This document shows, in pieces, positions 12,680-63,424 of a stretch of 64,000 bases of DNA. Below the pieces are notes generated by a model, which ran no database searches, was not told the origin of the DNA, and saw nothing but the letters and a program-made list of their open reading frames with translations. Position 1 is the first letter of the stretch. The number at the start of each line of letters is the position of its first letter. The position numbers and the translations under genes were made by a program. Where the stretch lies: contig JAPDFW010000134.1 of assembly GCA_028826165.1 (NCBI GenBank), positions 70,938 through 134,937 on the forward strand, read 5' to 3'. Origin of the DNA: Anaeramoeba ignava BMAN. Its lineage: Eukaryota; Protista; Anaeramoebae.

Positions 12680-15600
12680 ATGTCTTTTGAAATTCCAACA
12701 ATCCAAAAGTTTTTAGAACAAATTAAAGATTTCAATTCTGCTTCTAAAATTAAAACAATTACAACTTTAGCTGTTAAAGTTAAATCAACAGAAAAAACAG
12801 AAGAATTAACAAAATTTGATAATTTGCTAATTGAACTTTATAAAAGAAAATCTGAAGAAAAGAAATTAGCAGTTTTTGGTGCTTTTCATGCTAAAAGAAA
12901 AGATTTGCTAGTTCAATTTTTAAAAGATGAAGAAAGTATTTCTTTTAGTTCAAAAATTCTTTTATCAAAAATGATTGTTTCTGTTTTAGATCCAAATTCA
13001 GAAGAAGATATGAAAAAATTGAAAGAGTTAATTTTTAATTTACCAACAAAATTAAGAAATATTTTATTGAAAAAGGTTCAAACGAAAGGATTTAAGAAAT
13101 TTGTTAATGAAAATTTTGAGGAAATTCTTAATAGATTTGGAGTAAGTTTAATTTAAATTTAAAATTCATTTAATTAAAATTCATTTATAAAATTAATTTA
13201 AAAATTTAATAAAGGAATCTTCATCTCGTCAATTAATTGGCCTTCTTGATAAAGATAAATTCAATAAATTCTTCCCTCAATTTTATCCATTTTTCAAAGA
13301 AAACGGAAAATTTGCAATAATTCAATCAATCAAAATTAATCCAGATATTATTGTTTCATTTTTAACAGAAAAATTAGCCATTGCACCAGCATTACAATTA
13401 CCACAACTATGGCAAGAATATCAACTTATATTCAAACAATTAATGAATACAAACCCAGAAAAATTCATTGATTTATTAAGCAAATATTCACCAGTAGAAG
13501 AAATTCCAAGTTTCGTAACTCCAAGATTAAAAACACTCTTTAAAGTCAACAATGAAAAAATGATTGAAGTGTTTATGCGTCCAGAATATCTTGAAAAACA
13601 AAGAAAATCATGGCGATACCAATCAACAATCATCACAAAGAGAAAAATCAACAAAAAACTATCAAAGGATGATTTATCCAAAATCTGTCAATTTTTCAAA
13701 GAAAGTGAACTGAGAAAAATTCTTGCTAATTTACCTCCATCAGAACGTTTTGCAGCTTATGAAGATGCTTATAAAGAAGAACCAGATGATCAAATTCGGG
13801 ATGAATACATATTGTTGCTTCTTCCAATTGAACACAGAATTAACGAAGCCAAAAAAATGTTGAAAATTCCTGCAATTAATCAAGACGAAGAAAAAAAAAG
13901 AAATTTCGAAAAGCTTTTGGATATAAAAGAGCAAAGAGCAGTTTATGAGAAGGAAATCAAAGAAGCCGCATCAGCAGAAGAACGAGGAATTTTCTATAGT
14001 TATTATCTCATTTGCAGTTCATTATCAAAAAACGCAGAAGAAATTGAAAAAACACTCAAATTTATTGTGCCTCGAACAAAAAATGAACAAGAACCTGTTC
14101 GAAATCAAATTGTAAACGCGTTGAAATCACACGCAATCAAATATCTCAATGAGTCCCATATTGAATTGCTTAAGGAATTCTTGAAAAATGCTATGGATTC
14201 ACGTGATGCTTCAGATTCACTCAATGTTTTGATTGATTTATTTGTTAATTTAATCGAATTCAATTACAAAAAGAGCAAAACTCACAAACTTCTCAAACCA
14301 GACGAAAAAGAAAGTTATGATGATGCCTTTGCAAAGATTCCATTTATCAAATTCTGTTTGGATTCTCTGAAGAAGCTTTATATTGCGCAATCATACATAT
14401 CTTATTTAACCAAAAAGTTAACTTCATTCGAAGTCATTTTCCGTGCTGCCTTTAATTTCTTCAATTCTGGATCAACAGAAGCACAAAGATCCTTCTTCTC
14501 ATTCTGTCGTTGGTATCCACATCACAGATGGAGCCCTTGGATGCAAGAACAAATTGATAAATTCCTTGAAAATCTTTACAAAAAAGAAGATCTTAATAAC
14601 GACACTTTTGAAACATCAATCCGTTTTTATCTTTTTAACAGAAAATACAAATTTCAAAGAATTGAAAGCCTTCTTGAAAAAGACACCTCTCTTCTCAACA
14701 AAACCGGATTCCTCAAAGAATTACTTCTTCATCGCCAAGATCTTTGTGATAAATATGAAATCTTTGAAAACATCCCACTTGATCAACGAAAAATCCCCAT
14801 CAAAGGAAAAATCGATATTTCATCACTTAAACAAGAATCTGTGCTTTTGAATGTTATCGAGATAATTTCAGAAAGCAAGAAAATTGCGCGAAGAATATCA
14901 ATCGAAAACCAACACAAACTATTTGATTTTATAAAGAAAGCATTAGTTGAAATTGGTGAAGAAAAAGATAACGAAAATGATGACAATGATAATGATAGTG
15001 ATAGCGATGATAGTGATGATAATGATGATGATGATAAAGAGAAAAAAGATGAAGTCAATTACAAATACACAAAAGATCAAAAACGCGAATTTATCAAAGC
15101 AATTTCCAATTTGGATATTCTCAAACCAAGTGATGCCAAAGAATTAATGGATATTCTCAAAGACCAAGAGCTCATTTTCCAAGATCTTCTCGCAAATATG
15201 ATCAACCTAGATAACTACGAAGGATTGCTTGATCTTTATGTTCCTTATGTTAACACAGATTACGCCAAAATTGTGATGTTTTCCTTCTTGAAAATCGGAA
15301 CACTCTCATCAACAAAAGAGATCCAAAAAGTTGTGAATGATGTTCTTAAAATCAAAGACTTGAAAGTAACTGTTAGAAAAGAAATATACCGACTTCTTGG
15401 GTTTTACAAATTCCCTGAAACAAAAGAATTGCTTTTCAACGAATATTCCAAAGAACTTCATCCTCATGCCAAAATTGCACTTTTAAATATGCTTCGCTCA
15501 AAATTTTTAGATGAACCAAAAACTTGGGAAATTCTCGATAAGGAAATTCAATCAAAAGATAACAACATGTATGAAATGATTATTGCACAAAAATACACAA

Positions 15601-16475
15601 AAATCCCGATCAAATATTTGCTGAAATATGTAACACTTTTTGAACAGATTATCAAGTTCACAACCAAAGCTTCAGTTCTTAAAAGTGTTTTCACACAATT
15701 ACGCAATTGGGTTCGACCAGAATCAATGGAAACAACACAGAAAGTCATCGAGATTTGCGAAAATACAATCCTGAATATGGAAAGCAAAACAGAATGGGTT
15801 CTTGCTTTTGATGTTCTTTTATATGCTGCCCAATGCTTTGAATCAAGTGCTCTTTCACTTAAAAAATTCATCCTCAAATTACTCAATCTTGATTTTTCAA
15901 AAGATCTCGAAATTATCACAAAAGACAAAGATATGCCTCTTTATCAACGTGTTGATGATTGTTTGAATAAAATCTCAAATATTCCTCATCAAAACTTGAA
16001 TTTCCTAGAATCAGCTAATTTCTTTACAGAAGTTTCATCCTTTATTTTAGATAAAAAATTATATCCTTTCTTCGTCTTTTCTGGTCAATTTAAATTTGCC
16101 ACTTTGGAAATTGATGTTGAAAAATTCACAAAAATATTTTCTCAAGTTGAAAGTGATTTCAAACAATATCCATTTTTCCTTGATAAAATCATTAATTGGG
16201 TTGCCAAACAATACTTCTATAACAGACTTCTTCCTGGAATGGAATCAATATCAGTTGATATTATTAAGAAATTATTTGAAATGGGAAAAGATAACAGAAA
16301 TTTCAAAATTGCTGCTGCAAATATTTTAAAAGTTATTGGACCAAAAACAAAATGGATTGATTCTGCAATTGAAATTTTAGCACAAATGAGAAAAGATTCA
16401 GATTTAGAAATTTCGAGTATAAGTTCATCAATTTTATTATTTAATGAAACATCACAATCTCGAAATTTCTGGTAA
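12680..16475 (+). CDS. Large (~1240 aa) alpha-helical/ARM-like protein of unknown function, one intron (13142-13214)
   Basis: ORFs 12680-13156 and 13443-16475 join in frame through GTAAGT...TAAAG. Motif 'KNEQEPVR' and an acidic insert. Confidence 0.75.
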
Positions 16476-21081: not shown

Positions 21082-22554
21082 ATGGAAACTTATTTAAATT
21101 TAGAAAAACTTTCAAATGATTTAAAAAATTTATTTCAAAATCAAAATCAAAAAGAAAATCAAAATGAAAGTTATTTTGATTTTGAAATAATTTGTGAACA
21201 AAATCAAACTTCATTTAAAACTCATAAATCAATTCTTTCTTCAAGAAGTCAATATTTTAAATCTCTTTTTAAATCTAAAATGAAAGAATATCAAGAAAAT
21301 AAAATGATTCTAAAAGATGTTTCAAGTTCAGTTTTATTTTCAATTTTGAATTATTTTTATTCAGGAAAAATTGAAATTAATTTAGAAAATGCAATTCAAA
21401 TTTTAATTTTTTCATCAAAATATTTAATTGATGAATTAATTGAAATTTGTTTAAATTTTATCAAAAACAATTTACAATTTGAAACTATTGTTGATATTCT
21501 TAAACTATCTGAATCAATGAACTTAAATCAATTATTGGATTTTTCTTATCAATTTATTTTTGAAAATTTTAAAGAATTTATCAAAACTTCATTTTTTCTT
21601 GAACTTGAAGAAAATCATTTAAATTCAATATTATCAAATGATGAAATTCTAATAAATGAATTTGAGCTTTTCCAATCAATAATAAAATGGGGAAAACATA
21701 AATTAAATATTAATCAAGAAAAAGAAAATCAAAAACTTGAAAAAGAAGAAAAAGAAAAAATTCAAGATCAAATTTCCAATATTATTGATAAAATCAGATT
21801 TATTGATTTTTCAAAACAAGAACTTAAAGATACTTTGAAAGAAGATTTAATTCCAAATCAAATTTCACAAAAATTAATTCATTTCCAAAAACTTCAAAAT
21901 GAAAATGATAATAAAGAACTAAATGAATTTATTGAAAAAGAAAATTCATTAATTTTCAATTCAAATTTTCAATTCAAATCAAACATTATTTCAGAAAAAA
22001 AACATGTTAAGAAATTAAAAAAATGGATAAATGATGATGAATTCTTTTCTAAAATGAAATTAGGATTTTCAGCAACAAGAGATGGATTTAAAGCTAAAAA
22101 ATGGCATTCAATTTGTGATAATAAAGGAAAAACATTAGTTATTATCAAAACAAAAGATAATTTTATTTTTGGAGGATTTACTCAAGTTGGATTTACAACT
22201 AATAAATCAAAATGGAGTAGAAAAGATCGAAAACATAAAGATGGATATATTCGAGATATAAATGCATTTATTTTTTCATTAAGAAATGATAAACATAATA
22301 GAAAACCAGAGAAATTTACAATTAAAAAAGTACAAGCAGAAAATGCAATTTGGTATGATTTAAACTGTGGACCAATTTTTGGAAGTGGAAATGATTTTTT
22401 TCTACAAAATAATTTACATTTTGGTTATTCAAATTTTGGTCATAGTTACAAACTACCTAATGGAATTAAAGAAGGAACAAATGAAGCTAAAAGTTATTTA
22501 GCTGGTTCTTATGATAAATGGAAAGTTGATGAACTTGAAACTTTTTTCATTTAA
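21082..22554 (+). CDS. BTB-BACK-TLDc protein
   Basis: BTB 'FKTHKSILSSRSQYFKSLF', BACK 'NEFELFQSIIKW', TLDc 'SATRDGF...CDNKGKTLVIIKTKDNFIFGGFT...GPIFGSGND...VDELETF'. Intronless. Confidence 0.92.
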   Translation: METYLNLEKLSNDLKNLFQNQNQKENQNESYFDFEIICEQNQTSFKTHKSILSSRSQYFKSLFKSKMKEYQENKMILKDVSSSVLFSILNYFYSGKIEINLENAIQILIFSSKYLIDELIEICLNFIKNNLQFETIVDILKLSESMNLNQLLDFSYQFIFENFKEFIKTSFFLELEENHLNSILSNDEILINEFELFQSIIKWGKHKLNINQEKENQKLEKEEKEKIQDQISNIIDKIRFIDFSKQELKDTLKEDLIPNQISQKLIHFQKLQNENDNKELNEFIEKENSLIFNSNFQFKSNIISEKKHVKKLKKWINDDEFFSKMKLGFSATRDGFKAKKWHSICDNKGKTLVIIKTKDNFIFGGFTQVGFTTNKSKWSRKDRKHKDGYIRDINAFIFSLRNDKHNRKPEKFTIKKVQAENAIWYDLNCGPIFGSGNDFFLQNNLHFGYSNFGHSYKLPNGIKEGTNEAKSYLAGSYDKWKVDELETFFI

Positions 22555-22652: not shown

Positions 22653-24834
22653 TTAAAAATGAAGGTGTTTGTTAACAATGCAAAATGCTCCAACCAAAAA
22701 GATAAATCCTAAAACAAGAAACAATACCGAAATCGTAACTATACTTTTTGAAGTAGAATTATCAGTTGTTAATGATCCAGATTGTGAAGACGATAAACTA
22801 CTTTCTCCACAACTAAGATAACTATTACAAGCAGAAACTTGAACGAAATAATCTTCATCATCATATTGTGTATTAAAAGAAGTAGATGTTCCATTCACAA
22901 AAAATGTGCCTGAATCCATTCCTGAACTTGATTGAAAACTAATTGAGTAAAAAAATGGATTATTAACACAATTAATTGGAATGAGCCAACTACATGAAAT
23001 TGATAAAGGATGACTTGAACATTGTAGTAAATAAACTGGTCCAAATATTGTATCTATTGTTGTTGAAAATAATGCTCCCATATCATCTCCTAAGCATGCT
23101 AATGTTCTACAAGCATAAATTGCAAAATAATAAGTTGTTCCACAATCTAATGAAGACATTTCAAATGAAGTTGTTGTGTTATTAACTGATATATATGTAA
23201 TACTTAATCCATCTTCTTGATAATAAGTAATCAAATAATGATCAAGTTCTGGAACTTCTCCATCCATTGTAACATTTGGTGGATTCCAAGTAACATTGAT
23301 TGATTCATTTGTTGGAGCAAAAGTTAAATTTTGAACAACAGGAATTTTCGTTATTAAATCAGTTTGTAAAGATGGAGCTCCACATAATTTTGAATTAGGT
23401 TCACAAGCTTGAATTATTATTGAATAATTTGCATTTCCAGTTATATTTGGATAAGATGAATTGAATATTTGATAAGAAATATTTCCTGGAAACCGAGTTG
23501 GTTCTTCCATAATTTGCCATCCAATTCCATAGTCTATTCGATGCTCAAGTGGAAATGGATAATCGGTTTCATTCCAATAACATTCAAATGAAGAATAAAG
23601 TGAAGTACAATTTATTAAATCAATTGCTGGTGGAATCATTGCATAAACAAATGCTTGATTTGAGAATGTAACTCCCCAAACTCCAATAATCCCATAAATT
23701 GATACACTTACATATTCAGCTGTTTGAGTGATATCATAATAAAATCTTCTATTCCATTGATCTGAATAATATTGGAAAAAATACAAGTCTGTTAACTTTG
23801 ATCCAACAGCAATAAAATCACCTGAAACTGAAACGGATAAACCAAAATAAATTTCTGCTCTTAATCCGGAATTTTGAATTTTGATTTTGAATTTGATCTT
23901 GATTTTGATTTTGATTTTGATTTTGATTTTGATTTTGATTTTGATTTTGATTTTGATTTTGATTTTGATTTTGATTTTGATTTTGATTTTGATTTTGATT
24001 TTGATTTTGATTTTGATTTTCTAATTCTTCTCTTAAATAACTGTTAAAACTAAGTACTTCCTCCAAAGTCCAATTTCCTTCAGAATACCGATAAACAAAC
24101 GCAGCATCAAACTCAACTTCTCCAATAAGAACAACATCTCCTGAAGCTGCAACATCATTCCCCAAATATCCATAAGGATAATCAGAAAAATTTTGTTCAA
24201 GAAACCAATTAGATCCATTATATCTGTAAATAAATGCTTGTGAAGAATCGTTTGCTCCAATAACAATAACATCTCCTGAAACTGCAACAGCATTTCCATA
24301 TCCATTTAAACTTTCTGAAAAATTTTCTTCAAGATTCCAATATGATCCATTATATCTGTAAATAAATGCTTGATTTGAACCATAAGCTCCGATAACAATA
24401 ACCTCTTCATCAACTGAAACCGTAAATCCATATCCATTCAAACCTTCTGAAAAATTCTCTTCAAGATTCCAATATGATCCATTATATCTGTAAACGAATA
24501 CTTCTTGTGATTCATTTGAACCAACAACAATAACATTTCCTGAAATTGATGAACTAAATCCAAATTTCGCACTTGGTTCACTTAATACTTGTTCTAAAAC
24601 AAAAGTTGATCCATTGCATCTGTAGATAAAAACTTGCATTGTAAATGAATCTCCAACTATAATTACATCTTTGAAAACTGAAGAACTTCTTCCATAATCT
24701 TGAGTTGATGGTTCTGTAAGTATATCTAATTGTGTAAAAGTTCCTGGAATAGTTTCTAATAATTTTGTTGATACTTTTCCAATTTGTGTTGTTAAAATTA
24801 TTAAAAGGATTAAAAAGAAACAAGTTTTGTTCAT
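22653..24834 (-). CDS. Type I surface protein: signal peptide, FG-GAP-like beta-propeller repeats, fibronectin-III domains, C-terminal TM helix (one-base frameshift near 23875)
   Basis: N-terminal hydrophobic signal. Repeats 'YG.xVAVSGDVIVIGA..S.QAFIYRYNGS.W.LE'. Removing one base at the end of the QN run restores 'SGLRAEIYFGLSVSVSGDFIAVGS' in frame with ORF 22653-23786. FN3 motifs 'INVTWNPP...LDCGTTYYFAIYAC'. TM 'IVTISVLFLVLGFIFLVGAFCIV'. Confidence 0.8.
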
Positions 24835-51007: not shown

Positions 51008-52894
51008 TTAAAAAATTAAACAATTTTCTTTTTTTTTGTTTTTTTTTCTTTTGAGATTTTCATTTTTAAATTTGTTAGTTAATAAATCAAATAAATTTGG
51101 ATTTGTTTGATTTAATTGAAAATAATCAATTCCTCTTTGAATTTCATTAATTATTTCTTTTGTAATTTGAATTTCATCTTTAATTTGATTTGAATAAATC
51201 CAATATTCAAATATTTGAAATGATTTATTACTTAATTCACTATAATCTGTAACTTTATTAGAATTATCTTCAGTTACAGATAAAAACATTCCTCGATATA
51301 ATTCACTTCTCATTATTAATATTAATTTTGGAAATTTATATTGTTTTTCTTTTCTTTCAATTATAAAATCTTTTTCATTTTCATTTAAATAAATTCTTTT
51401 CATTGTTTCTTCAATTTTTTCATTTGAATTTATAATTTCTTTAATTTCAGAATATAATTTTGGATTTATTATTCTGTTTGAATAAATCATTTCAAATATT
51501 TGATTTGATTCTTTAATTGATTTATTTGAAATAATTTCTTGAAGTTTTTCAATTTGATTTTGATTTTGATTTAATCTATATTTCAATATTAATTTATGAG
51601 CTTCAATTATTTCTCCATTTTTGGTTTTAAATGAAATATTACAAAATTCTTTTCTTCTAAATAATTTTATCAAATCTTCTTCAAGATTGGAAAAAGAAGG
51701 AGAAGAATAATAAAGAAATGATTTGTAATCTCCACAAGAAATATGATAATTAGAAATATCTTCATTAAATCTTAATTTAGGAATTTCAATTTGAATTGGA
51801 ATTGATTTCGTTTCTGTATCTTCAGTTCCTAATTGGCCAAAATAATTATCTCCAAATCCAATCAATTTTGATTTGGAAGTTAAAATCAAAGTATGAGCAC
51901 TTCCACAAGAAAAATCAAGAATATTATTATCATTTTCAAATAAAGATGATTTGATTTCAGTAAATTCATAAGTATCTTCATTTTTGCCAAGTCCATTTAA
52001 TAGATAATCTCCAGTTGAATAAAGTTTTCTTTTTGGATTTTCATTTTCATTTTCAATCAACATTATTGAATGACAAGATCCAGACTTAATATCAATTATT
52101 TTACCTTTTGGAATATTTTGGATTTGAGTTAGTTCTTGGATTTTTTCCTCTTTTTTTCTTGATTCTCCTAATCCAAGTTGACCATAATTATTATCACCAC
52201 ATCCAAATAATTCTTGATTTGAATTTAAAAGAAAAACATGTCTTGAATCATTTCCTGAAAATATTTTAGAAACATTTTTCATTATTAAAATTGGTTTTTC
52301 TGTTTTTCGTGTTTTAGAATCAAAAAATATTTCTCCAAATTTATTTGAACCAATTCCATAAGTATTTTGATTTGAAGTTAATAAGTAAATTGACTTGTAT
52401 CCACAAACAACATCTTGAATTATTCTATCATTTGTATCTTCAATTAATGATGAAATATTGATGAATTCATTTGGATTTTCTGGATTAATATATCTTCCTT
52501 TGGCAAATACATTTCCTTCTATTGTTAAAATAGCTTCATTCGCATAACCAACAGTTACTTTTTGAATATTTTCTTCAATTTGGATTTTTTTAGGATTTGG
52601 ATTTGAATCATTTTCATTTAAATATTCTATTGCTTTTCCATTTTTAAAAAGGAAAATTGTTCCAAAGAAACTTGATGAAATTTGTTTAATTTGTTTTTCA
52701 TTTTCATTTTCATTTTCATTTTCATTTTCAATTTCATTTTCATTTTCATTTTCATTTTCATTTTCATTTTCATTTTCATTTTCATTTTCATTTTCATTTT
52801 CAAATTTAAATTGAATTGGTTTTTTTATTTTTTTTGATTCATTTTTGATAAGTTTTGGATTTTTATTTAAACCAAAAAATAAACAATCATTCAT
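51008..52894 (-). CDS. RCC1-repeat plus tandem BTB protein, copy 1 (polybasic CaaX tail)
   Basis: RCC1 motifs 'CGDNNYGQLGLG', 'SCGSAHTLIL...GDNYFGQLG'. BTB 'IEAHKLIL', 'LILIMRSELYRGMF'. Ends KRKKNKKKENCLIF. Confidence 0.92.
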   Translation of the reverse strand: MNDCLFFGLNKNPKLIKNESKKIKKPIQFKFENENENENENENENENENENENEIENENENENENEKQIKQISSSFFGTIFLFKNGKAIEYLNENDSNPNPKKIQIEENIQKVTVGYANEAILTIEGNVFAKGRYINPENPNEFINISSLIEDTNDRIIQDVVCGYKSIYLLTSNQNTYGIGSNKFGEIFFDSKTRKTEKPILIMKNVSKIFSGNDSRHVFLLNSNQELFGCGDNNYGQLGLGESRKKEEKIQELTQIQNIPKGKIIDIKSGSCHSIMLIENENENPKRKLYSTGDYLLNGLGKNEDTYEFTEIKSSLFENDNNILDFSCGSAHTLILTSKSKLIGFGDNYFGQLGTEDTETKSIPIQIEIPKLRFNEDISNYHISCGDYKSFLYYSSPSFSNLEEDLIKLFRRKEFCNISFKTKNGEIIEAHKLILKYRLNQNQNQIEKLQEIISNKSIKESNQIFEMIYSNRIINPKLYSEIKEIINSNEKIEETMKRIYLNENEKDFIIERKEKQYKFPKLILIMRSELYRGMFLSVTEDNSNKVTDYSELSNKSFQIFEYWIYSNQIKDEIQITKEIINEIQRGIDYFQLNQTNPNLFDLLTNKFKNENLKRKKNKKKENCLIF

Positions 52895-53100
52895 TTTTGA
52901 AAAGAAAAAAAATGAAAAAATGATTTTTGGAATTTTAATTTTAATTTTGATTTTTAATTTTGATTTTAATTTTAATTTGAATTTTAATTTTGATTTTAAA
53001 TTTTAATTTTAATTTTAATTTTAATTTTAATTTTAATTTTAATTTTAATTTTAATTTTGGAATTTTAATTTTAATTTTAATTTTGATTTTAATTTTAATT

Positions 53101-54855
53101 TTAATTTTGATTATTAAATTTTTTAATTAATAAATCAAATAAATTTGGTTTTGTTTGATTTAATTGAAAATAATCAATTCCTCTTTGAATTTCATTAATT
53201 ATTTCTTTTGTAATTTGAATTTCATCTTTAATTTGATTTGAATAAATCCAATATTCAAATATTTGAAATGATTTATTACTTAATTCACTATAATCTGTAA
53301 CTTTATTAGAAGTATCATTTGTTACAGATAAAAACATTCCTCGATATAATTCACTTCTCATTATTAATATTAATTTTGGAAATTTATATTGTTTTTCTTT
53401 TCTTTCAATAATAAAATCTTTTTCTTTTTCATTTAAATAAATTCTTTTCATTGTTTCTTCAATTTTTTCATTTAAATTTATAATTTCTTTAATTTCAGAA
53501 TATAATTTTGGATTTATTTTGGAATTATTTGAATAAATCATTTCAAATATTTGATTAGATTCTTTAATTGATTTTTTTGAAATAATTTCTTGAAGTTTTT
53601 CAATTTGATTTTCATTTTCATTTTGATTTAATCTATATTTTAATATTAATTTATGAGCTTCAATTATTTCTCCATTTTCGGTTTTAAATGAAATATTACA
53701 AAATTCTTTTCTTCTAAATAATTTTATCAAATCTTCTTCAAGATTGGAAAAAGAAGGAGAAGAATAATAAAGAAATGATCTTTCATATCCACAAGAAAGA
53801 TGATAATTAGAAATATCTTCATTAAATCTTAATTTAGGAAGTTCAATTTGAATTGGAATTAATTGATATTTTGTATTTCCAGTTCCTAATTGACCATCAT
53901 CATTATCACCAAATCCAATTAATTTATTATTGGAAGTTAAAATCAAAGTATGAGCATTTCCACAAGAAAAATCAAGAATATTATCATCATTTTCAAATAA
54001 ATATGATTTGATTTCAGTAAATTCATAAGTATTTTGATCTTGGCCAAGTCCATTATATGAGGAGCATCCACATGAATAAAGTTTTCTTTTTGGATTTTCA
54101 TTTTCAATCAACATTACTGAATAAGAACAACCACATTTAATATCAATTATTTTACCTTTTGGAATATTTTGGATTTTGGTTAATTTTTGGATTATTGTTT
54201 CTTTTTTTCTTGATTCTCCTAATCCAAGTTGACCATATTGATTATATCCGCATACAAATAATTCTTGATTTGAATTTAAAAGAAAAACATGATTTGAAGA
54301 ATTTCCTGAAAATATTTTAGAAACATTTTTCATTATTAAAATTGGTTTTTGTGTTTTTTCAAGTGTTTTAGAATCAAAACCAAGTTGACCATATTGATTT
54401 GAACCAATTCCATAAGCATTTTGATTTGAAGTTAATAAGTAAAATGAATAAGCACCAGAAACAATATCTTGAATTATTCTATCATTTGTATCTTCAATTA
54501 ATGATGAAATATTGATAAATTCTTTTGGATTATTTGGATTAATATCTTTTCCTTTTGCAAATACATTTCCTTCTTTTGTTAAAATAGCTTCATTTTGATA
54601 ACTAACAGTTACTTTTTGAATATTTTCAATTTGGATTTTTTCAGGATTTTGATTTGAATCGTTTTGTTTTAAATATTCTATTGCTTTTCCATTTTTAAAA
54701 AGGAAAATTATTGAAAATAAACTTGATGAAATTTGTTTAATTTGTTTTTCATTTTCATTTTCAAATTTAAATTGAATTGGTTTTGTTATTTTATCTTTTT
54801 CATTTTTGATAAGTTTTGGATAGTCATTTAAACCAGAAAATAAACAATCATTCAT
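53101..54855 (-). CDS. RCC1-repeat plus tandem BTB protein, copy 2
   Basis: Intact paralogue of copy 1. Ends KKFNNQN, no CaaX. Confidence 0.92.
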   Translation of the reverse strand: MNDCLFSGLNDYPKLIKNEKDKITKPIQFKFENENEKQIKQISSSLFSIIFLFKNGKAIEYLKQNDSNQNPEKIQIENIQKVTVSYQNEAILTKEGNVFAKGKDINPNNPKEFINISSLIEDTNDRIIQDIVSGAYSFYLLTSNQNAYGIGSNQYGQLGFDSKTLEKTQKPILIMKNVSKIFSGNSSNHVFLLNSNQELFVCGYNQYGQLGLGESRKKETIIQKLTKIQNIPKGKIIDIKCGCSYSVMLIENENPKRKLYSCGCSSYNGLGQDQNTYEFTEIKSYLFENDDNILDFSCGNAHTLILTSNNKLIGFGDNDDGQLGTGNTKYQLIPIQIELPKLRFNEDISNYHLSCGYERSFLYYSSPSFSNLEEDLIKLFRRKEFCNISFKTENGEIIEAHKLILKYRLNQNENENQIEKLQEIISKKSIKESNQIFEMIYSNNSKINPKLYSEIKEIINLNEKIEETMKRIYLNEKEKDFIIERKEKQYKFPKLILIMRSELYRGMFLSVTNDTSNKVTDYSELSNKSFQIFEYWIYSNQIKDEIQITKEIINEIQRGIDYFQLNQTKPNLFDLLIKKFNNQN

Positions 54856-54932
54856 TTTTGAAAAAGAAAAAAAATGAAAAAAAAAATTCTTAATTCTTAA
54901 TTTTTAATTATTTTTATTCAAATATTTTGTTT

Positions 54933-56360
54933 TTAATCCAAAAAATAGCATTCAATTTCTTCCACTTCCCAATTTTGAAAAGAACCTGCTAAATAATTTC
55001 TTGCTTCATTTGTTCCATAAATTATATCTTTTGGAGTATTATAAGTGAATCCAAAATTAGTGTATCCATTCCGAAGATTTGAATTGAGAAGAATATCAAA
55101 ACCAGCTCCAAAAATAGGACCAAAAAGAGAATTTGTTTGAATAGCTGTTTTTTGTTGATTTTGTTTTATATTAAATTTTTGAGGTGGATCGTTTTTAGGA
55201 TTTTTCAATGTGAAAATGAAAGCTTTTGGATCACTCAAAAATTTCTTTTGTCCTGAAATAAATCCAACTTCTGAAAATCCTCCAAAAATATAATTATCTT
55301 TTGTTTTGATAATTATCAATGTTTTTCCTTTATCATCAACTTTAAAGTGGAAAATTTGAGAAGAAAAACCATCTTTTTTTGTTGAAAAACCTTTTTGCAT
55401 TGAATTGAAAAAATTCTCATCTTCCAAGAAAATGTTCAAGTTTTTGATTTGTTCATTTTCAGAAAGAATTGTTGAATTTTTCCATGTTTCTTTAAGAATT
55501 TGATTTTTCATTTGAATTTCTTTTTGATTTTTCATTTGAATTTCTTTTTGATTTTTCATTTGATTTTGAATTGGATTTTGATTTTGAATTTGATTTTGAT
55601 TTTGAATTGGATTTGAATTATTATCACATAATTTGATAATGAAATTAGTCACCATTTCTTTTCTTTGATCTAAATCCATATTTCGATCTTCATAATGACT
55701 TTGGATCCAATCCTCTATCATGTGAAAAAATTTGGAATCAAAAATTTCTTTTTGTTTTTTTTCAAATTCCAAAATGATGTTCATTTGATTTTGATCTAAA
55801 TTCAAAAAACTTCCTTTTTTTTGGAGAGATGAGAAACGAGAATGAATGAAATTGAGGCATTTTTTTTGGATTTTTTTGGATTTTATGAGTTGATTCTCTT
55901 TAAAATAATGAAAAACATTTGATTCATTTAACGAATCAATAATTCGTTTTTCAAGAAAATTGGAAAAAAAATCCAAATGAAAAAATTTGGAACTTTTCAA
56001 AAGAGGAATTAAGTCTTGGGTTAAAGAAAAAGAGATTTCGCCAGTATAGATATATCTCAAAATGATTTCCATTGTTTCTTTATTAAAATCAGGAAAACGA
56101 ATTTCAGAACTTTCTTGTTGATTGAAAAAAGATTTAAAAAAAGAACTTCGCACATTCAAAATTGCTTTATGAACTTTTATTTCAATTAGATTCCCTTTTT
56201 CTTTTTCTTTCACAAAAATTGAAAAATCTTTAAATTTGTTTTCCAAAAAAAGGTGTGAAAAATTGTCAATTAAATTATTTATGGATCTTTCTTTTTCTTG
56301 GAAAGAAGTTGTGATTCTTAATTGGTTTTCATTGGTTTTATTACTGGAATCTCGATTCAT
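54933..56360 (-). CDS. BTB-BACK-TLDc protein
   Basis: 'IKVHKAILNVRSSFF', 'ILRYIYTG', TLDc 'KKDGFSSQIFHFKVDDKGKTLIIIKTKDNYIFGGF...GPIFGAG...VEEIECY'. Confidence 0.9.
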   Translation of the reverse strand: MNRDSSNKTNENQLRITTSFQEKERSINNLIDNFSHLFLENKFKDFSIFVKEKEKGNLIEIKVHKAILNVRSSFFKSFFNQQESSEIRFPDFNKETMEIILRYIYTGEISFSLTQDLIPLLKSSKFFHLDFFSNFLEKRIIDSLNESNVFHYFKENQLIKSKKIQKKCLNFIHSRFSSLQKKGSFLNLDQNQMNIILEFEKKQKEIFDSKFFHMIEDWIQSHYEDRNMDLDQRKEMVTNFIIKLCDNNSNPIQNQNQIQNQNPIQNQMKNQKEIQMKNQKEIQMKNQILKETWKNSTILSENEQIKNLNIFLEDENFFNSMQKGFSTKKDGFSSQIFHFKVDDKGKTLIIIKTKDNYIFGGFSEVGFISGQKKFLSDPKAFIFTLKNPKNDPPQKFNIKQNQQKTAIQTNSLFGPIFGAGFDILLNSNLRNGYTNFGFTYNTPKDIIYGTNEARNYLAGSFQNWEVEEIECYFLD

Positions 56361-56597
56361 TTTATTTTATATTCAATTTTAATCAAAGTGAAAGGAAAAT
56401 GAAAAAAAAAAAATGAAAAAACAAAAAAAAATTTTTTTTCAAAAAGATTTTCAATTAAAAAACAAAATACAATTTTAATTTTAATTTTAATTTTAATTTT
56501 AATTTTAATTTTAATTTTAATTTTAATTTTAATTTTTAATTTAATTTTGATTTTAATTTTAATAATTTTAATTTTAATTTTAATTTTGATTTTAATT

Positions 56598-58427
56598 TTA
56601 ATTATTAAATTTGTTAATTAATAAATCAAATAAATTTGGATTTGTTTGATTTAATTGAAAATAATCAATTCCAATTTGAATTTCATCAATCATTTCTTGT
56701 GTAATTTGAATTTCATCTTTAATTTGATTTGAATAAATCCAATATTCAAATATTTGAAATGATTTATTACTTAATTCACTATAATCTGTAACTTTATTAG
56801 AAGTATCATCTGTTACAGATAAAAACATTCCTCGATATAACTCACTTCTCATTATTAATATTAATTTTGGAAATTTATATTGTTTTTCTTTTCTTTCAAT
56901 AATAAAATCTTTTTCTTTTTCATTTTCATTTTCATTTAAATAAATTCTTTTCATTGTTTCTTCAATTTTTTCATTTGAATTTATAATTTCTTTAATTTCA
57001 GAATATAATTTTGGATTTATTTTGGAATTATTTGAATAAATCATTTCAAATATTTGATTTGATTCTTTAATTGATTTTTGAAATAATTTCTTGAAGTTTT
57101 TCAATTTGATTTTGATTTTGATTTAATCTATATTTCAATATTAATTTATGAGCTTCAATTATTTCTCCATTTTCGGTTTTAAATGAAATATTACAAAATT
57201 CTTTTCTTTCAAATAGTTTTATCAAATCTTCTTCAAGATTGGAAAAAGAAGGAGAATAATAATAAAGAAATGATTTATTTCCTCCACAAGAAATATGATA
57301 ATTAGAAATATTTTCATTAAATCTTAATTTAGGAAGTTCAATTTGAATTGGAATTAATTGAGATTTTGTATTTCCAGTTCCTAATTGACCATAAGAATTA
57401 TCTCCAAATCCTATCAAATTTGAATTGGAAGTTAAAATCAAAGTATGAGCATTTCCACAAGAAAAATCAAGAATATTATTATCATTTTCAAATAAAGATG
57501 ATTTGATTTCAGTAAATTCATAAGTATCTTCATTTTTGCCAAGTCCATTAAATGGATAATATCCACATGAATAAAGTTTTTTTTTTTTTGATTTTGATTT
57601 TGATTTTCATTTTCAATCAACATTATTGAATAAGAATATCTACATTGAATATCAATTATTTTGCCTTTTGGAATATTTTGGATTTTGGTTAATTTTTCGA
57701 TTTTCCATTTTTTTCTTGATTCTCCTAATCCAAGTTGACCATCTTGGCTATATCCGCATCCAAATAATTCTTGATTTGAATTTAAAAGAAAAACATGATT
57801 TGAAGAATTTCCTGAAAATATTTTAGAAACATTTTTCATCATTAAAATTGGTTTTTCTGTTTCATTAAGTGTTACAGAATCAAACCCAATTTGACCATAA
57901 TTATTTGAACCAATTCCATAAGCATTTTGATTTGAAGTTAATAAGTAAAATGAATGAGATCCAGAAACAATATCTTGAATTATTCTATCATTTGTATCTT
58001 CAATTAATGATGAAATATTGATAAATTCTTTTGGATTTTTTCGATTAATATATCTTCCTTTGGCAAATACATTTCCTTCTTTTGTTAAAATAGCTTCATT
58101 TTTCCAACCAACAGTTACTTTTTGAATATTTTCAATTTGGATTTTTTCAGGATTTTGATTTGAATCATTTTCACTTAAATATTCTATTGCTTTTCCATTT
58201 TCAAAAAGGAAAATTGTTGAATCATGTACTGAAGAAATTTGTTTAATTTGTTTTTCATTTTCATTTTCATTTTCATTTTCATTTTCATTTTCATTTTCAT
58301 TTTCATTTTCATTTTCATTTTCATTTTCATTTTCAAATTTAAATCGAATTGGTTTTGTTATTTTTTTTGGTTTATTTTTGAAAAGTTTTGGATTTTTATT
58401 TAAACCAAAAAATAAAATTTCATTCAT
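56598..58427 (-). CDS. RCC1-repeat plus tandem BTB protein, copy 3 (two homopolymer frameshifts)
   Basis: Three overlapping ORFs are collinear with copy 2. Breaks at the T13 run (57577-57589) and at T5 versus T7 (57075-57079). Assembly error or pseudogene. Confidence 0.8.
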
Positions 58428-58548
58428 TTTTGAAAAGAAAAAAATGAAAAAATGAATTTTAATTTTAATTTTAATTTTAATTTTAAAATTAATTTTAATT
58501 TTAATTTTAATTTTAATTTTGATTTTAATTTTAATTTTAATTTTGATT

Positions 58549-60398
58549 TTAATTATTAAATTTGTTAATTAATAAATCAAATAAATTTGGATTTGTTTGA
58601 TTTAATTGAAAATAATCAATTCCAATTTTAATTTCATTAAGGATTTCTTGTGTAATTTGAATATCTTCTTTAATTTGATTTGAATAAATCCAATATTCTA
58701 ATAATTGGAATGATTTATTACTTAATTCACTATAATCTGTAACTTTATTTGAAGTATCATCAGTTACAGATAAAAACATTCCTCGATATAACTCACTTCT
58801 CATTATTAATATTAATTTAGGAAATTTATATTGTTTTTCTTTTCTTTCAATTATAAAATATTTTTCATTTTCATTTTCATTTAAATAAATTCTTTTCATT
58901 GTTTCTTCAATTTTTTCATTTGAATTTATAATTTCTTTAATTTCAAAATATAATTTTGGATTTATTTTGGAATTGTTTGAATAAATCATTTCAAATATTT
59001 GATTTGATTCTTTAATTGATTTTTTTGAAATAATTTCTTGAAGTTTTTCAATTTGATTTTCATTTTGATTTAATCTATATTTCAATATTAATTTATGAGC
59101 TTCAATTATTTCTCCATTTTTGGTTTTAAATGAAATATCACAAAATTCTTTTCTTTCAAATAGTTTTATCAAATCTTCTTCAAGATTGGAAAAAGAAGGA
59201 GAAGAATAATAAAGAAATGATTTGTAATATCCACAAGAAATATGATAATTTGAAATATTTTCATTAAATCTTAATTTAGGAAGTTCAATTTGAATTGGAA
59301 TTAATTGAGATTTTGTATCTCCAGTTCCTAATTGCCCGGAATTATTATTACCAAATCCTATCATTTTCCCTTTAGAAGTTAAAATCAAAGTATGAAAGCA
59401 TTTCCACAAGAAATATCAAGAATATTATCATCATTTTCAAATAAAGATGATTTGATTTCAGTAAATTCATAAGTATCTTCATTTTTGCCAAGTCCATTAT
59501 ATCCAGAATATCCACATGAATAAAGTTTTCTTTTTGGATTTTGATTTTGATTTTGATTTTGAATTTGATATTGAATTTGATTTTGATTTCCATCTTCAAT
59601 CAACATTATTGAATAAGCAAATCCACATTGAATATCAATTATTTTGCCTTTTGGAATATTTTGGATTTTGGTTAATTTATTGATTTTTAGATTATTGTTT
59701 CTTCTTGATTCTACTAATCCAAGTTGACCATATTCATTATTTCCGTATACAAATAATTCTTGATTTGAATTTAAAAGAAAAACATGATTTGAAGAACTTC
59801 CTGAAAATATTTTAGAAACATTTTTCATCATTAAAATTGGTTTTTGTGTTTCATTAAGTGTTTTAGAATTAAAACCAAGTTGATTAGAAAGATTTGAACC
59901 AATTCCATAAACATTTTGATTTGAAGTTAATAAGTAAATCGAATAAGCACTAGAAACAATATCTTGAATTATTCTATCATTTGTATCTTCAATTAATGAT
60001 GAAATATCGATAAATTTTTTTGGATTTTTTGGATTAATATGTCTTCCTTTGGCAAATACATTTCCTTCTTTTGTTAAAATAGCTTCATTTTGATAACCAA
60101 CAGTTACTTTTTGAATATTTTCAATTTGGATTTTTTCAGGATTTTGTTTTGAAATTCTTTCACTTAAATATTCTATTGCTTTTCCATTTTCAAAAAGGAA
60201 AATTGTTGAATAACTTCCTGATGAAATTTGTTTAATTTGTTTTTCATTTTCATTTTCATTTTCATTTTCATTTTCATTTTCATTTTCATTTTCATTTTCA
60301 TTTTCAAATTTAAATTGAATTGGTTTTGTTATTTTATCTGGTTCATTTTTGATAAGTTTTGGAAATTTATTTGAACCAAAAAATAAAATTTCATTCAT
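58549..60398 (-). CDS. RCC1-repeat plus tandem BTB protein, copy 4 (one frameshift near 59397)
   Basis: Two ORFs collinear with the paralogues. Break in GCT-TT-CAT. Confidence 0.82.
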
Positions 60399-60494: not shown

Positions 60495-61631
60495 ATGGAT
60501 GATTTTGAAGAAAAAATGCCAATAGTTATTGATAATGGATCAGGATTTATTAAATCTGGGTTTGGAGGAGAAGAAGAACCTAAATCCAAATTTACAACAA
60601 TAATCGGGAAACCGAAACATTTAGAAATGATTAAAAAAATTAATACAAAAAAATATTATATTGGAAATGAAGCAGAAAATCAAAGAGGAATATTAGAACT
60701 TGAATATCCAATGGAAAGGGGAATAGTGAGAAATTGGGACAATATGGAAAAAATATGGGATTATATTTTCTTTAATGAATTAAAAGTGGAACCTGAAGAT
60801 CAACCACTTCTTCTCAGCGAAGTGCCAATGAATCCCAAGTCAAATCGAGAGAAAATCACTGAAATCATGTTTGAAGTATTTCATGTCCCATCCTTTTATA
60901 TCTCACTTCCAGGAATTTTAGCACTTTATTCATCAGGAAGAACAACAGGAATTGTTATAGATATTGGAGATGGTGTTACTTATACACTTCCAGCTTATGA
61001 AGGGTTTATCCTTCGAAATCACATTTCAAGAGCTAATTTTGGTGGAACAGATTTAACTGATTATTTAATCAATATTTTAAATGAAAAGGATTTGTTTTTT
61101 ACTACTTCTGCAGAAAGAGAAACTGCAAAGGATATCAAAGAAAAACTTGGTTATTCCACTTTTGATTTTAATCAAGAAATGATATTATCCAATTCCAAAA
61201 ATCATTCTATTGACAAAAATTATGAACTGCCTGATGGACAAGTTATCACAATTGGAAATGAAAGATTTAGATGTGCAGAAGTTTTGTTTAATCCTTCTTT
61301 GATGGGAATAGAACAACCAGGAATCCATCAAATTGTTTCTAATTCGATTCAAAAATGTGATATTGATATTCAACGTGATTTATTGGCAAATATTATTTTT
61401 TCAGGTGGTTCAACTTTGTTTCCAGGAATTTCTGATAGATTCGTCAAGGAATTGGTTCCCTTATTTTCTCCTGTAATGAGAATAATGCCTGTTTGTCCTC
61501 CTGAAAGGCAATTCTCTGTTTGGATTGGTGGATCAATTTTAACTACTCTTTCTTCTTCTCAATCTATGTGGATTCCAAAATCTGAATTTGAAGAAGTTGG
61601 AAATCAAATCATTCACCAAAAATGTTTTTAA
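60495..61631 (+). CDS. Divergent actin / actin-related protein
   Basis: 'VIDNGSGFIKSGFGG', 'LYSSGRTTGIVIDIGDGVT', 'YELPDGQVITIGNERFRCAE', 'SVWIGGSIL', ends HQKCF. Clearly diverged from conventional actin. Confidence 0.93.
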   Translation: MDDFEEKMPIVIDNGSGFIKSGFGGEEEPKSKFTTIIGKPKHLEMIKKINTKKYYIGNEAENQRGILELEYPMERGIVRNWDNMEKIWDYIFFNELKVEPEDQPLLLSEVPMNPKSNREKITEIMFEVFHVPSFYISLPGILALYSSGRTTGIVIDIGDGVTYTLPAYEGFILRNHISRANFGGTDLTDYLINILNEKDLFFTTSAERETAKDIKEKLGYSTFDFNQEMILSNSKNHSIDKNYELPDGQVITIGNERFRCAEVLFNPSLMGIEQPGIHQIVSNSIQKCDIDIQRDLLANIIFSGGSTLFPGISDRFVKELVPLFSPVMRIMPVCPPERQFSVWIGGSILTTLSSSQSMWIPKSEFEEVGNQIIHQKCF

Positions 61632-61749: not shown

Positions 61750-63424
61750 TTAAATGAAATAAGTCTCAAGTTCATCAACAACCCATGAAGAATGAGAACC
61801 AGCTAAATAACTTTTAGCTTCATCTGTATTATAAGTAATTCCATCAGGAAGATTATAACGGCCACCAAAATTGGTTCGGCGACATTGAAGTGTAGAAGCT
61901 ATACTCACATCTCCACTGAACCCAAAACCTCCAAAAGTTGGACCTCTATCCTTATAATTATAAAAAATTGCATATTGTTCTTGACCTTTTTTAATTGTAA
62001 ACTTTTCTGGTTTTCTATCTCCTTTATCATTTCTTAATGAAAAAATAAATGCATTTTTATCATTTATCCATCCATAATTCTTTTTTAGGTTTTTTTCATT
62101 CCATTTTGATTTATCAGTTGTCCATCCAACTTGAGTAAATCCTCCAAAAATAAAATTTTGTTTTGTTTTGATAATAACTAGTGTTTTTCCTTTCCCATCA
62201 ACTGCTTTATGCCATTTTCTAGCAGAAAATCCATTTCTTTTTGCTGAATACCTTTTTTTCATTTTAAAAAAAAAATCATTATCATTTATCCATTCTTGTA
62301 ATTTCTTAATATATTCTTCTTCTGTAATAATTTTTGAATTTGAAAATTGAGGAAAATTCTTTTTGATTAGTTTTAATTTCTTTTCAAATTCCAAATCTTT
62401 TTGATATTGATCTCCATATTTATCAAAGGTTGGTTTCATTTTCTCAACTTCTTTCTTCCATTTCTCTTCAATTTCAATTTTCATTTGTTGATTTTCTTTT
62501 TCTTTCTTATCAATTTCTTTCTCTTTCTTTTCAACCTCTTTATCTTTGTTTTCAACTTCTTTTTGATTATCTTGAATAACTTGTGTTTGAATATCAACTA
62601 AAAAAGAATTTGGAAGAAAAATTTGAAATTGTTTTAATTTATCAAAATCTTGTTTTGAAATTGAATCTTTATCAAATAATGAAAAAAAAGAATGAAATAA
62701 TCTTTTCTTTTCAATTCCCTTTTCTTTTTCTTTTTCTTTTTCTTTCTTTCCTTTTAATCTTTTATTTCTTTTTTCAATCCAATTATTTAAAAATTGAAAA
62801 AAATCAAATTGAAAAATTTCTTTTTTTTCTTGTTTAAATTGAATAAATTTGATAATTTCTTCTTTAGTTAAATTAAATAAATTTTCATTATTTTGAATTT
62901 GGGAAAAATTTTGATTTATTAATTCAAAACATTTTATTTCAATTTCATTTGAATTTAAATTTCGATTTTGAATAAAAATTGGAAAAATTTGAATAATTAA
63001 TTGAATTTAAAATTTTTTTTTTGAATAATTTCTTTCAATAAATTTAATTTAAAATAAATTGAAATTTCAATAATTGAAGAAGATTTTCTTGATTCTCAAA
63101 AGAAATATTTCCATAATAAATATAACTCAAAATTGATTCCATTTCTTTTTATTAAATTGATTTAAAGAAATAGAAAGAGACTCTTGCCTTAATGACTCAT
63201 TAAAAAGGAGATCTTGAAGATAAAATTGATTTATGAACTTTTAATTTCAAAAGGATTTGATTTATTCTCAACAAAAATTGAAAAATCTTTAAATGAATTT
63301 CCATTTAAAAGGTTTGAATAATCTTTAATTAAATTTTTGTTACTTTTTTAAATTTTCACATTTCATTTTCATTTTCATTTTGATTTGCATTTTCAATTTG
63401 GTTATTATTATCATTATTATCCAT
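61750..63424 (-). CDS. BTB-BACK-coiled coil-TLDc protein with many homopolymer frameshifts in the 5' half (possible pseudogene)
   Basis: Intact TLDc ORF 61750-62484. Upstream fragments read 'FKDFSIFVENKSNPFEI','VHKSILSSRSPF','ILSYIYYGNISF', matching 54933-56360. ATG at 63424. Confidence 0.7.

Follow-up and report, generated by a model that had tools for sequence, protein, structure and literature searches.

The anaerobic amoeba Anaeramoeba ignava BMAN, a free-living metamonad that hosts intracellular Desulfobacteraceae symbionts, contains a family of about 1,100-1,270 intronless genes, each encoding an RCC1-like propeller followed by two BTB folds, in which hypervariable residues are confined to the propeller and lie nearly all in the loops of one of its faces. 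Four members of the family occupy positions 51,008 to 60,398 of a stretch of 64,000 nucleotides (positions 70,938 to 134,937 of contig JAPDFW010000134.1), here called the window. An initial annotation of the window had taken these four copies for a positively selected set of ubiquitin-ligase receptors for foreign proteins. That interpretation is partly supported, and the family is much larger than the four copies seen in the window. As the best overall explanation, in which we place middling confidence, we propose a cytosolic repertoire of this many binding proteins that is selected for diversity, homogenised by gene conversion and probably composed of Cullin-3 (Cul3) adaptors for foreign proteins.

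Size of the Family

The A. ignava assembly (42,843,398 bases in 147 contigs, ~81% A+T), which was made from nanopore reads and polished with Pilon (PMC11550330, supplement), contains 1,265 occurrences of a conserved motif from the BTB half and 1,113 occurrences of a conserved propeller motif; the reversed patterns, used as controls, both gave 0. Sixty loci, chosen as the best matches to copies 1 and 2 of the window, yielded 59 distinct intact copies, and both motifs were found in all 59. The family thus makes up ~7-8% of the genes, the total being roughly 14,900 (derived from 612 genes = 4.1%), and ~5% of the genome. Its members form small tandem clusters, which occur on both strands and are spread over more than a hundred contigs. 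Among the 59 copies the proteins are 80-92% identical (median 84%) and the DNA 89-96%.

All close full-length homologues with a named source are from A. ignava, as in a lineage-specific expansion. The organism also has more distant RCC1-BTB subfamilies (35-60% identity), two of which are represented by transcripts in EukProt. A search starting from one distant homologue returned generic RCC1-repeat proteins only, without establishing a counterpart in A. flamelloides. Three A. ignava proteins annotated as 'protein aardvark' (P0125, P0127 and P0132) are fusions in which an extra N-terminal region precedes an RCC1-BTB-BTB unit of 50-60% identity.

Variable Residues on One Face of the Propeller

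In the alignment of the 59 intact copies (residue numbering throughout is that of copy 2) 25 columns exceed 2.4 bits, all of them within the propeller and none in the BTB folds. Twenty-two lie in the turns between strands A and B and at the starts of the C-D loops, which are two loops per blade on the same propeller face; the remaining three (21, 166 and 330) sit in the continuation of the C-D loop (outer ring). On the opposite face, formed by the B-C turns and D-A links, 0 of 69 positions are hypervariable. The faces were assigned via propeller topology and an alignment with UVR8. The loop-restricted hypervariability described for the four window copies thus extends to the sampled family, with no scattering over both faces, and all loop strings quoted for copies 1-4 in the initial annotation match the window when read by position.

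The mean column entropy is 2.45 bits for the loop set defined by structure, 0.46 for the other propeller positions and 0.19 for the BTB half, and the same variability profile is found in 86 NCBI proteins outside the 59 (r = 0.97). Residues 204, 243, 264, 300 and 317 align with W198, W233, W250, W285 and W302 of UVR8, tryptophans of the dimer interface of that protein (PMC7455749). Of the four residues in which the loops had been called rich, tyrosine (15% vs 4% elsewhere) and aspartate (9% vs 3.6%) are indeed enriched, but asparagine and serine are near the protein background. Glu-Asn/Gln-Asn hexamer microsatellites at codons 30-38, ~250-255, 410-415 and 474-478 vary in length, in frame, among the copies; they lie off the variable face.

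Architecture of the Protein

Residues 1-365 are modelled by AlphaFold with confidence as a seven-bladed, RCC1-like propeller, for which Foldseek finds HERC2, RCC1, RPGR and UVR8 with template modelling scores of ~0.7-0.8 depending on the target. The adaptor half is constant, as had been stated, but has two tandem BTB folds rather than one. Modelled with a more diverse alignment, this C-terminal half reached a predicted local distance difference test score (pLDDT) of 91.5 and a predicted template modelling score (pTM) of 0.87, and its best Foldseek matches, over the whole length, are the tethered POZ-POZ dimers 4u2m and 4u2n. In the model the two BTBs form a single-chain pseudo-dimer. Profile searches with the second BTB (BTB2) give KBTBD4 as the closest match in sequence, SPOP and others also being found. 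An invariant aspartate, D514, preceded by Val-Thr-variable, aligns, with a gap of one residue, near the hydrophobic-x-acidic motif in the alpha3/beta4 loop of KBTBD4. Neither a signal peptide nor a membrane helix is evident in the AlphaFold model. Six mildly variable sites of BTB2 (513, 544, 554, 557, 558 and 578) are apparently under positive selection and could mark a contact with a cullin or with an antagonist.

Selection on the Loop Codons

Selection was estimated with custom codon-model code on a FastTree topology, in place of PAML, and independently of a tree with a custom allele-frequency approximation in the style of GenomegaMap. The tree-based codon mixture favoured omega (dN/dS) above 1 with twice the log-likelihood difference (2dlnL) being 2085, or 1191-1615 once double and triple changes were allowed. 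P(omega>=3) exceeded 0.95 at 41 sites, 40 of them in the propeller, with posterior means mostly of 4-14. The tree-free estimate of omega was 5-12 for the loops, both for the set defined by structure and for that defined by independent proteins, 0.4-0.5 for the other propeller codons and 0.15-0.18 for the BTBs. In ~107 copy-equivalents not one in-frame stop was found at the loop codons, of which a neutral A/T equilibrium would predict ~12% per codon, and the loop residue spectrum differs from the neutral A/T expectation in isoleucine (2% vs 24%), aspartate (9% vs 0.7%) and tryptophan (1.2% vs ~0).

The apparent size of dN/dS varies with the baseline chosen, since the loop codons and their immediate surroundings show elevated synonymous variation as well. 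The positive selection postulated for the window copies holds, with omega ~5-14, against the gene-wide synonymous rate; relative to local dS omega is no more than 1-3. Local synonymous variation at the loops is raised 3-4x; with a free local mutation rate the loop omega is 0.6-5.8, mostly not significant; and pN/pS relative to local pS is only 1.3-2.0. Comparison of the five closest pairs gives a pN/pS of 2.0 relative to local pS (Fisher p = 0.013) and ~5 relative to pS elsewhere. On the whole we regard it as highly probable that the family is a repertoire of binders selected for diversity.

Exchange Among the Copies

The copies behave as a single recombining pool. This follows from star-like trees, in which terminal branches account for 86-89% of the length, from the absence of any split common to the propeller-scaffold and BTB trees (0/56), from the decay of linkage between scaffold variants (r2 of 0.48 at 1-2 bp, background at 11-20 bp) and from three multi-base alleles that are unlikely to recur. 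The latter (codons 3-4, an indel at 444-447 and codons 513-515) are each carried by a third to half of the copies; all four combinations are found, and r2 is near 0. Rare alleles travel together over no more than ~5 bp. Gene conversion, which the initial annotation had raised, is very probably what makes the copies one pool.

No exotic micro-conversion has to be invoked: ordinary tracts of 0.5-1 kb among ~1,200 exchanging copies were calculated to give decay within 5-10 bp (rho ~2N/L per base). Tracts shared between pairs were never longer than permutation allows. If the family is at equilibrium, a neutral diversity near 0.07 would require conversion to outpace point mutation by a factor of the order of 10,000 per site; the alternative to equilibrium is a recent burst followed by shuffling.

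Proposed Function and Alternatives

We propose that a constant chassis, made of the RCC1-like propeller and the BTB-BTB pseudo-dimer, carries ~25-35 variable residues on the ligand-binding face. Frequent ectopic gene conversion would keep the chassis uniform and shuffle loop alleles into new combinations, and selection for rare binding surfaces would retain new amino-acid changes, so that every copy comes to display a different surface. Each copy would bind other ligands via its variable face, the propeller capturing the target protein and the second BTB recruiting Cul3/Rbx1 for its ubiquitylation. As the likeliest targets we consider foreign proteins that evolve fast, whether they are effectors of intracellular bacteria, come from viruses or belong to the Desulfobacteraceae symbionts. 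That the targets are foreign, which we deem fairly probable, is suggested by the pattern of evolution, and a similar proposal exists for the F-box and MATH-BTB genes of nematodes (PMC4063957).

A role as Cul3 adaptor we hold to be slightly favoured. Of the features of BTB-type Cul3 adaptors the proteins have the BTB fold, twice in tandem, and in the propeller with its variable face a candidate for a separate substrate domain; a 3-box or BACK domain is absent, and the family is therefore not filed among the Cul3 adaptors, though it probably works like them. Some Cul3 adaptors, the KCTDs, lack a 3-box. IBTK, a mammalian protein with RCC1-BTB-BTB architecture, serves as a Cul3 receptor and requires its BTBs for binding (PMC4447969). 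In the A. ignava genome ~8 cullin loci are candidates for the partner of the second BTB.

Besides the weaker signal of selection relative to the local baseline, several points weigh against this interpretation. The model ends with the last helix of BTB2, and Pfam finds no BACK domain after it; IBTK without 3-box binds Cul3 weakly, and its RCC1 part is dispensable for the substrate Pdcd4 (PMC4447969). Transcript evidence for the subfamily of the window copies was not obtained, and the sample of 59 genes, being the best matches to copies 1 and 2, is not random.

It is conceivable, though we think it unlikely, that the same diversity-selected repertoire has nothing to do with ubiquitin ligases and that its BTB-BTB unit oligomerises or docks to other BTB proteins, whereby the target would be sequestered or a signal raised. 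The lack of a 3-box, other BTB genes nearby and the presence of the non-cullin POZ dimers BCL6/Miz1 among the nearest folds fit this idea. Against it speak the top sequence-profile match of BTB2, which is the Cul3 adaptor KBTBD4, the invariant acidic D514 near the cullin-binding loop, a dimer interface that is already satisfied by the tandem BTBs, and the link of the RCC1-BTB relatives IBTK and RCBTB1 to Cul3.

An improbable variant is that selection is aided by a local increase in mutation, the loop codons receiving short changes of several bases from an error-prone process that is targeted or linked to repair. At the fourfold synonymous position immediately 5' of a loop codon diversity is 0.27 vs 0.07 (p = 2.6e-6) but not raised at -4 and -7 (0.03 and 0.02), synonymous differences inside the loop codons amount to 0.21 vs 0.07, and permitting multi-base hits raises the log likelihood by 127. 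In a toy forward simulation, which was small and noisy, rarity selection plus conversion gave 3.3 bits at a background diversity near 0.07, 15x hypermutation without rarity selection 1.3 bits only, not 3, and selection alone, with recombination at the fitted rate, a synonymous halo of no more than 1.5-2x and, within codons, 0.04-0.12. Hypermutation thus falls short of the observed diversity and selection alone explains only part of the synonymous excess, from which it follows that diversifying selection is needed and an additional local mutation supply is possible. Hitch-hiking and multi-step paths, however, inflate local dS; the loop codons are not adenine-templated as in diversity-generating retroelements (DGRs), their third positions remain A/T-rich and they include no nonsense alleles. 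It would be bolder still, and seems to us improbable, to see in the family an anticipatory, antibody-like library of >1,000 genes for intracellular receptors, diversified by shuffling through conversion and by locally focused multi-base mutagenesis at the face codons, that hands bacterial or viral proteins over to ubiquitin-dependent destruction and possibly polices the symbionts.

The variable face might also be directed at the amoeba's own fast-evolving proteins (expanded families, products of mobile elements or inteins) or at symbiosome regulators, to which we give little credence. Anaeramoeba has many expanded families and retroelements, and inteins as well (PMC10710043), and host proteins are the normal substrates of Cul3 adaptors; diversifying selection over >1,000 interchangeable copies that do not form stable orthologue-like lineages nevertheless better fits unpredictable targets.

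The very high copy number, the short repetitive spacers, 13 frameshift junctions in ~107 copy-equivalents and the use of Pilon could raise the suspicion that the family was amplified neutrally or selfishly while its surface loops were under relaxed constraint, or that the pattern is an artefact which arose when nanopore reads were assembled and polished. This explanation is largely refuted and very improbable, since relaxation limits omega to 1 against gene-wide dS (observed 5-14), sequencing error could not confine itself to one face, the opposite-face loops are conserved and the BTBs under strong purifying selection, stops are absent, the residue spectrum is non-neutral and a Pfam scan found no transposase or reverse transcriptase domain in the family unit.

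The Window and Its Surroundings

The features of the window that concern the family are compiled in Table 1. The initial annotation spoke of four tandem paralogues. Four RCC1-BTB genes are indeed present, but only copies 1 and 2 are single open frames, copies 3 and 4 being frameshifted, and between copies 2 and 3 the array is broken by an unrelated BTB-BACK-TLDc gene. The frameshifts of copy 3 indicate either a pseudogene or nanopore/polishing errors; errors are plausible because one of the two falls within 13 consecutive A and polished nanopore reads underlie the assembly.

Table 1. RCC1-BTB copies and associated features at 51008-60398 of the window (codon numbers refer to copy 2)
Feature	Position	Strand	Basis
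Copy 1, RCC1-propeller + BTB-BTB, intact, intronless, 628 amino acids	51008..52894	-	Open reading frame; Pfam RCC1, WD40_RLD, BTB
Spacer, short, of A/T hexamer repeats with a pyrimidine tract and an A-run at its end, right before the start codon	52895..53100	-	Sequence
Copy 2, intact, intronless, 584 amino acids	53101..54855	-	Open reading frame; Pfam; AlphaFold model
Copy 2, second BTB, residues ~465-584, no 3-box/BACK after it	53104..53463	-	Pfam BTB; profile matches KBTBD4, SPOP
Copy 2, mildly variable BTB2 sites, several on one helix	codons 513, 544, 554, 557, 558, 578 (window ~53120-53320)		
Copy 2, first BTB fold, short, divergent, residues ~371-456	53488..53745	-	C-terminal-half model; Foldseek
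Copy 2, seven-bladed RCC1-like propeller, residues 1-365	53761..54855	-	Pfam RCC1/WD40_RLD; AlphaFold model
Copy 2, hypervariable codons of A-B turns/C-D loops	codons 9, 11, 12, 46, 86, 87, 135, 136, 154, 155, 188, 204, 206, 243, 244, 264, 266, 300, 301, 317, 319, 357, 358		
BTB-BACK-TLDc gene, not a member of the RCC1-BTB family	54933..56360	-	Pfam TLD, BTB, BACK; present in NCBI as annotated
Copy 3, two frameshifts: ~57601 (run of 13 A), ~57079	56598..58427	-	Assembly
Copy 4, one frameshift: +2 bases ~59397, inside the sixth A-B loop	58549..60398	-	Assembly

The DNA of the four copies is 91-94% identical, which is no closer than that of random family members (median 91.5%). The window copies are therefore not recent tandem duplicates; recent duplication holds for five neighbour pairs only. 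The layout of the spacer at 52895-53100 recurs at 58428-58548, at 54856-54932 and upstream of 60398. Every start codon of the family has within 30 bases upstream a conserved pyrimidine tract, a TCA core and a terminal A-run; in the 59 genes positions -25 to -6 are 87% pyrimidine, and three invariant A precede the start. The arrangement is reminiscent of the metamonad initiator element.

BTB-BACK-TLDc genes, among them the one in the array, and one TLDc-only gene lie at 54933-56360 (-), 21082-22554 (+) and 61750-62484 (-); apparently they are a second expanded BTB family interspersed among the RCC1-BTB arrays. An open reading frame at 11429-12391 (+) has two BTB matches. Head to head with copy 4, with less than 100 bases between the start codons, lies a divergent actin-like gene (60495-61631 (+)). 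A glycerate kinase gene of a bacterial-type Pfam family (PF02595; 47247-48518 (+)) is a possible lateral transfer. Adjoining open reading frames with FG-GAP repeats (23818-24834 (-)) and fibronectin-III domains (22653-23786 (-)) perhaps encode a single surface protein. Two long open reading frames, at 2653-6441 (-) with 1262 amino acids and at 13443-16475 (+) with 1010 amino acids, have no Pfam match.

Relation to Known Systems and Significance

The closest functional analogues are the expanded F-box and MATH-BTB adaptors of nematodes and plants, to whose nematode members the family had already been likened. The comparison is supported. Nematodes and plants have hundreds of such genes (~520 F-box genes in Caenorhabditis elegans), for which a recognition of foreign proteins has been proposed (Thomas, 2006, as cited in PMC4063957), and both systems join a constant cullin-side domain to a variable substrate-side domain. 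Against gene-wide dS, and more weakly against local dS, the A. ignava family likewise combines positive selection in the substrate-side domain, the propeller, with purifying selection in the BTB half. It differs in using an RCC1 propeller as binder, in belonging to a unicellular anaerobic metamonad and in that its >1,100 copies, ~91% identical, form one recombining pool. The nematode and plant families are far more diverged and evolve by birth-and-death.

In evolutionary terms the WD40 repertoire of the NWD/HNWD genes (het-d, het-e) of Podospora anserina is closest, sharing with the A. ignava family a beta-propeller, concerted evolution across loci and pairs of positively selected codons that flank a conserved codon, all on the interaction face (PMC1805685). 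The fungal proteins function in non-self recognition, and their mutation supply is possibly raised (PMC1805685). In Podospora the exchanged unit is one of ~70 near-identical repeats in 10 NLR genes (PMC1805685), in A. ignava it is the whole gene with divergent blades; unlike the Podospora proteins, those of A. ignava carry a BTB-BTB tail and, in a Pfam scan, no NACHT or cell-death domain.

Domain order is what the family has in common with IBTK, Btb1 of Schizosaccharomyces pombe and RCBTB1/2, in which RCC1 repeats are followed by BTB, IBTK having two BTBs (PMC4447969, PMC4974088). These are single or few conserved genes with a 3-box, whereas the A. ignava proteins lack ankyrins, the 3-box and a long C-terminus. 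UVR8, RCC1, HERC and RPGR have the same fold and bind proteins by the same face, but with fixed surfaces and partners.

DGRs, too, keep the scaffold constant and vary residues rich in Tyr/Asn/Asp on a single binding surface. In A. ignava, by contrast, the variation is stored in many genomic copies. Mutagenesis of the DGR type was rejected on the codon pattern: the adenine-specific signature is absent, ~35% of the loop codons ending in a purine and Lys, Glu, Gln, Arg and Trp being common. No reverse transcriptase or template repeat adjoins the copies in the window, reverse transcriptases of the genome lying elsewhere, mostly in long open reading frames.

The combination of an RCC1 propeller as variable binder with >1,000 whole genes, ~91% identical, in one conversion pool of a unicellular eukaryote was not found described in the literature. 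The text of the genome paper mentions no RCC1 or BTB family (PMC11550330), and in portions of its supplement the RCC1-type PANTHER names are confined to transfer candidates, A. ignava having 0-2 genes of this kind.

Little is known of cell-autonomous immunity in protists. In this family, whose host harbours sulfate-reducing symbionts inside its cells, we see a strong candidate for a protist recognition repertoire. With it the question whether expanded ubiquitin-ligase adaptors recognise foreign proteins can be put to the test outside animals and plants. The family is at the same time an unusually large natural data set on the balance between conversion and selection, and a map of the residues of an RCC1 propeller that can be varied for binding.

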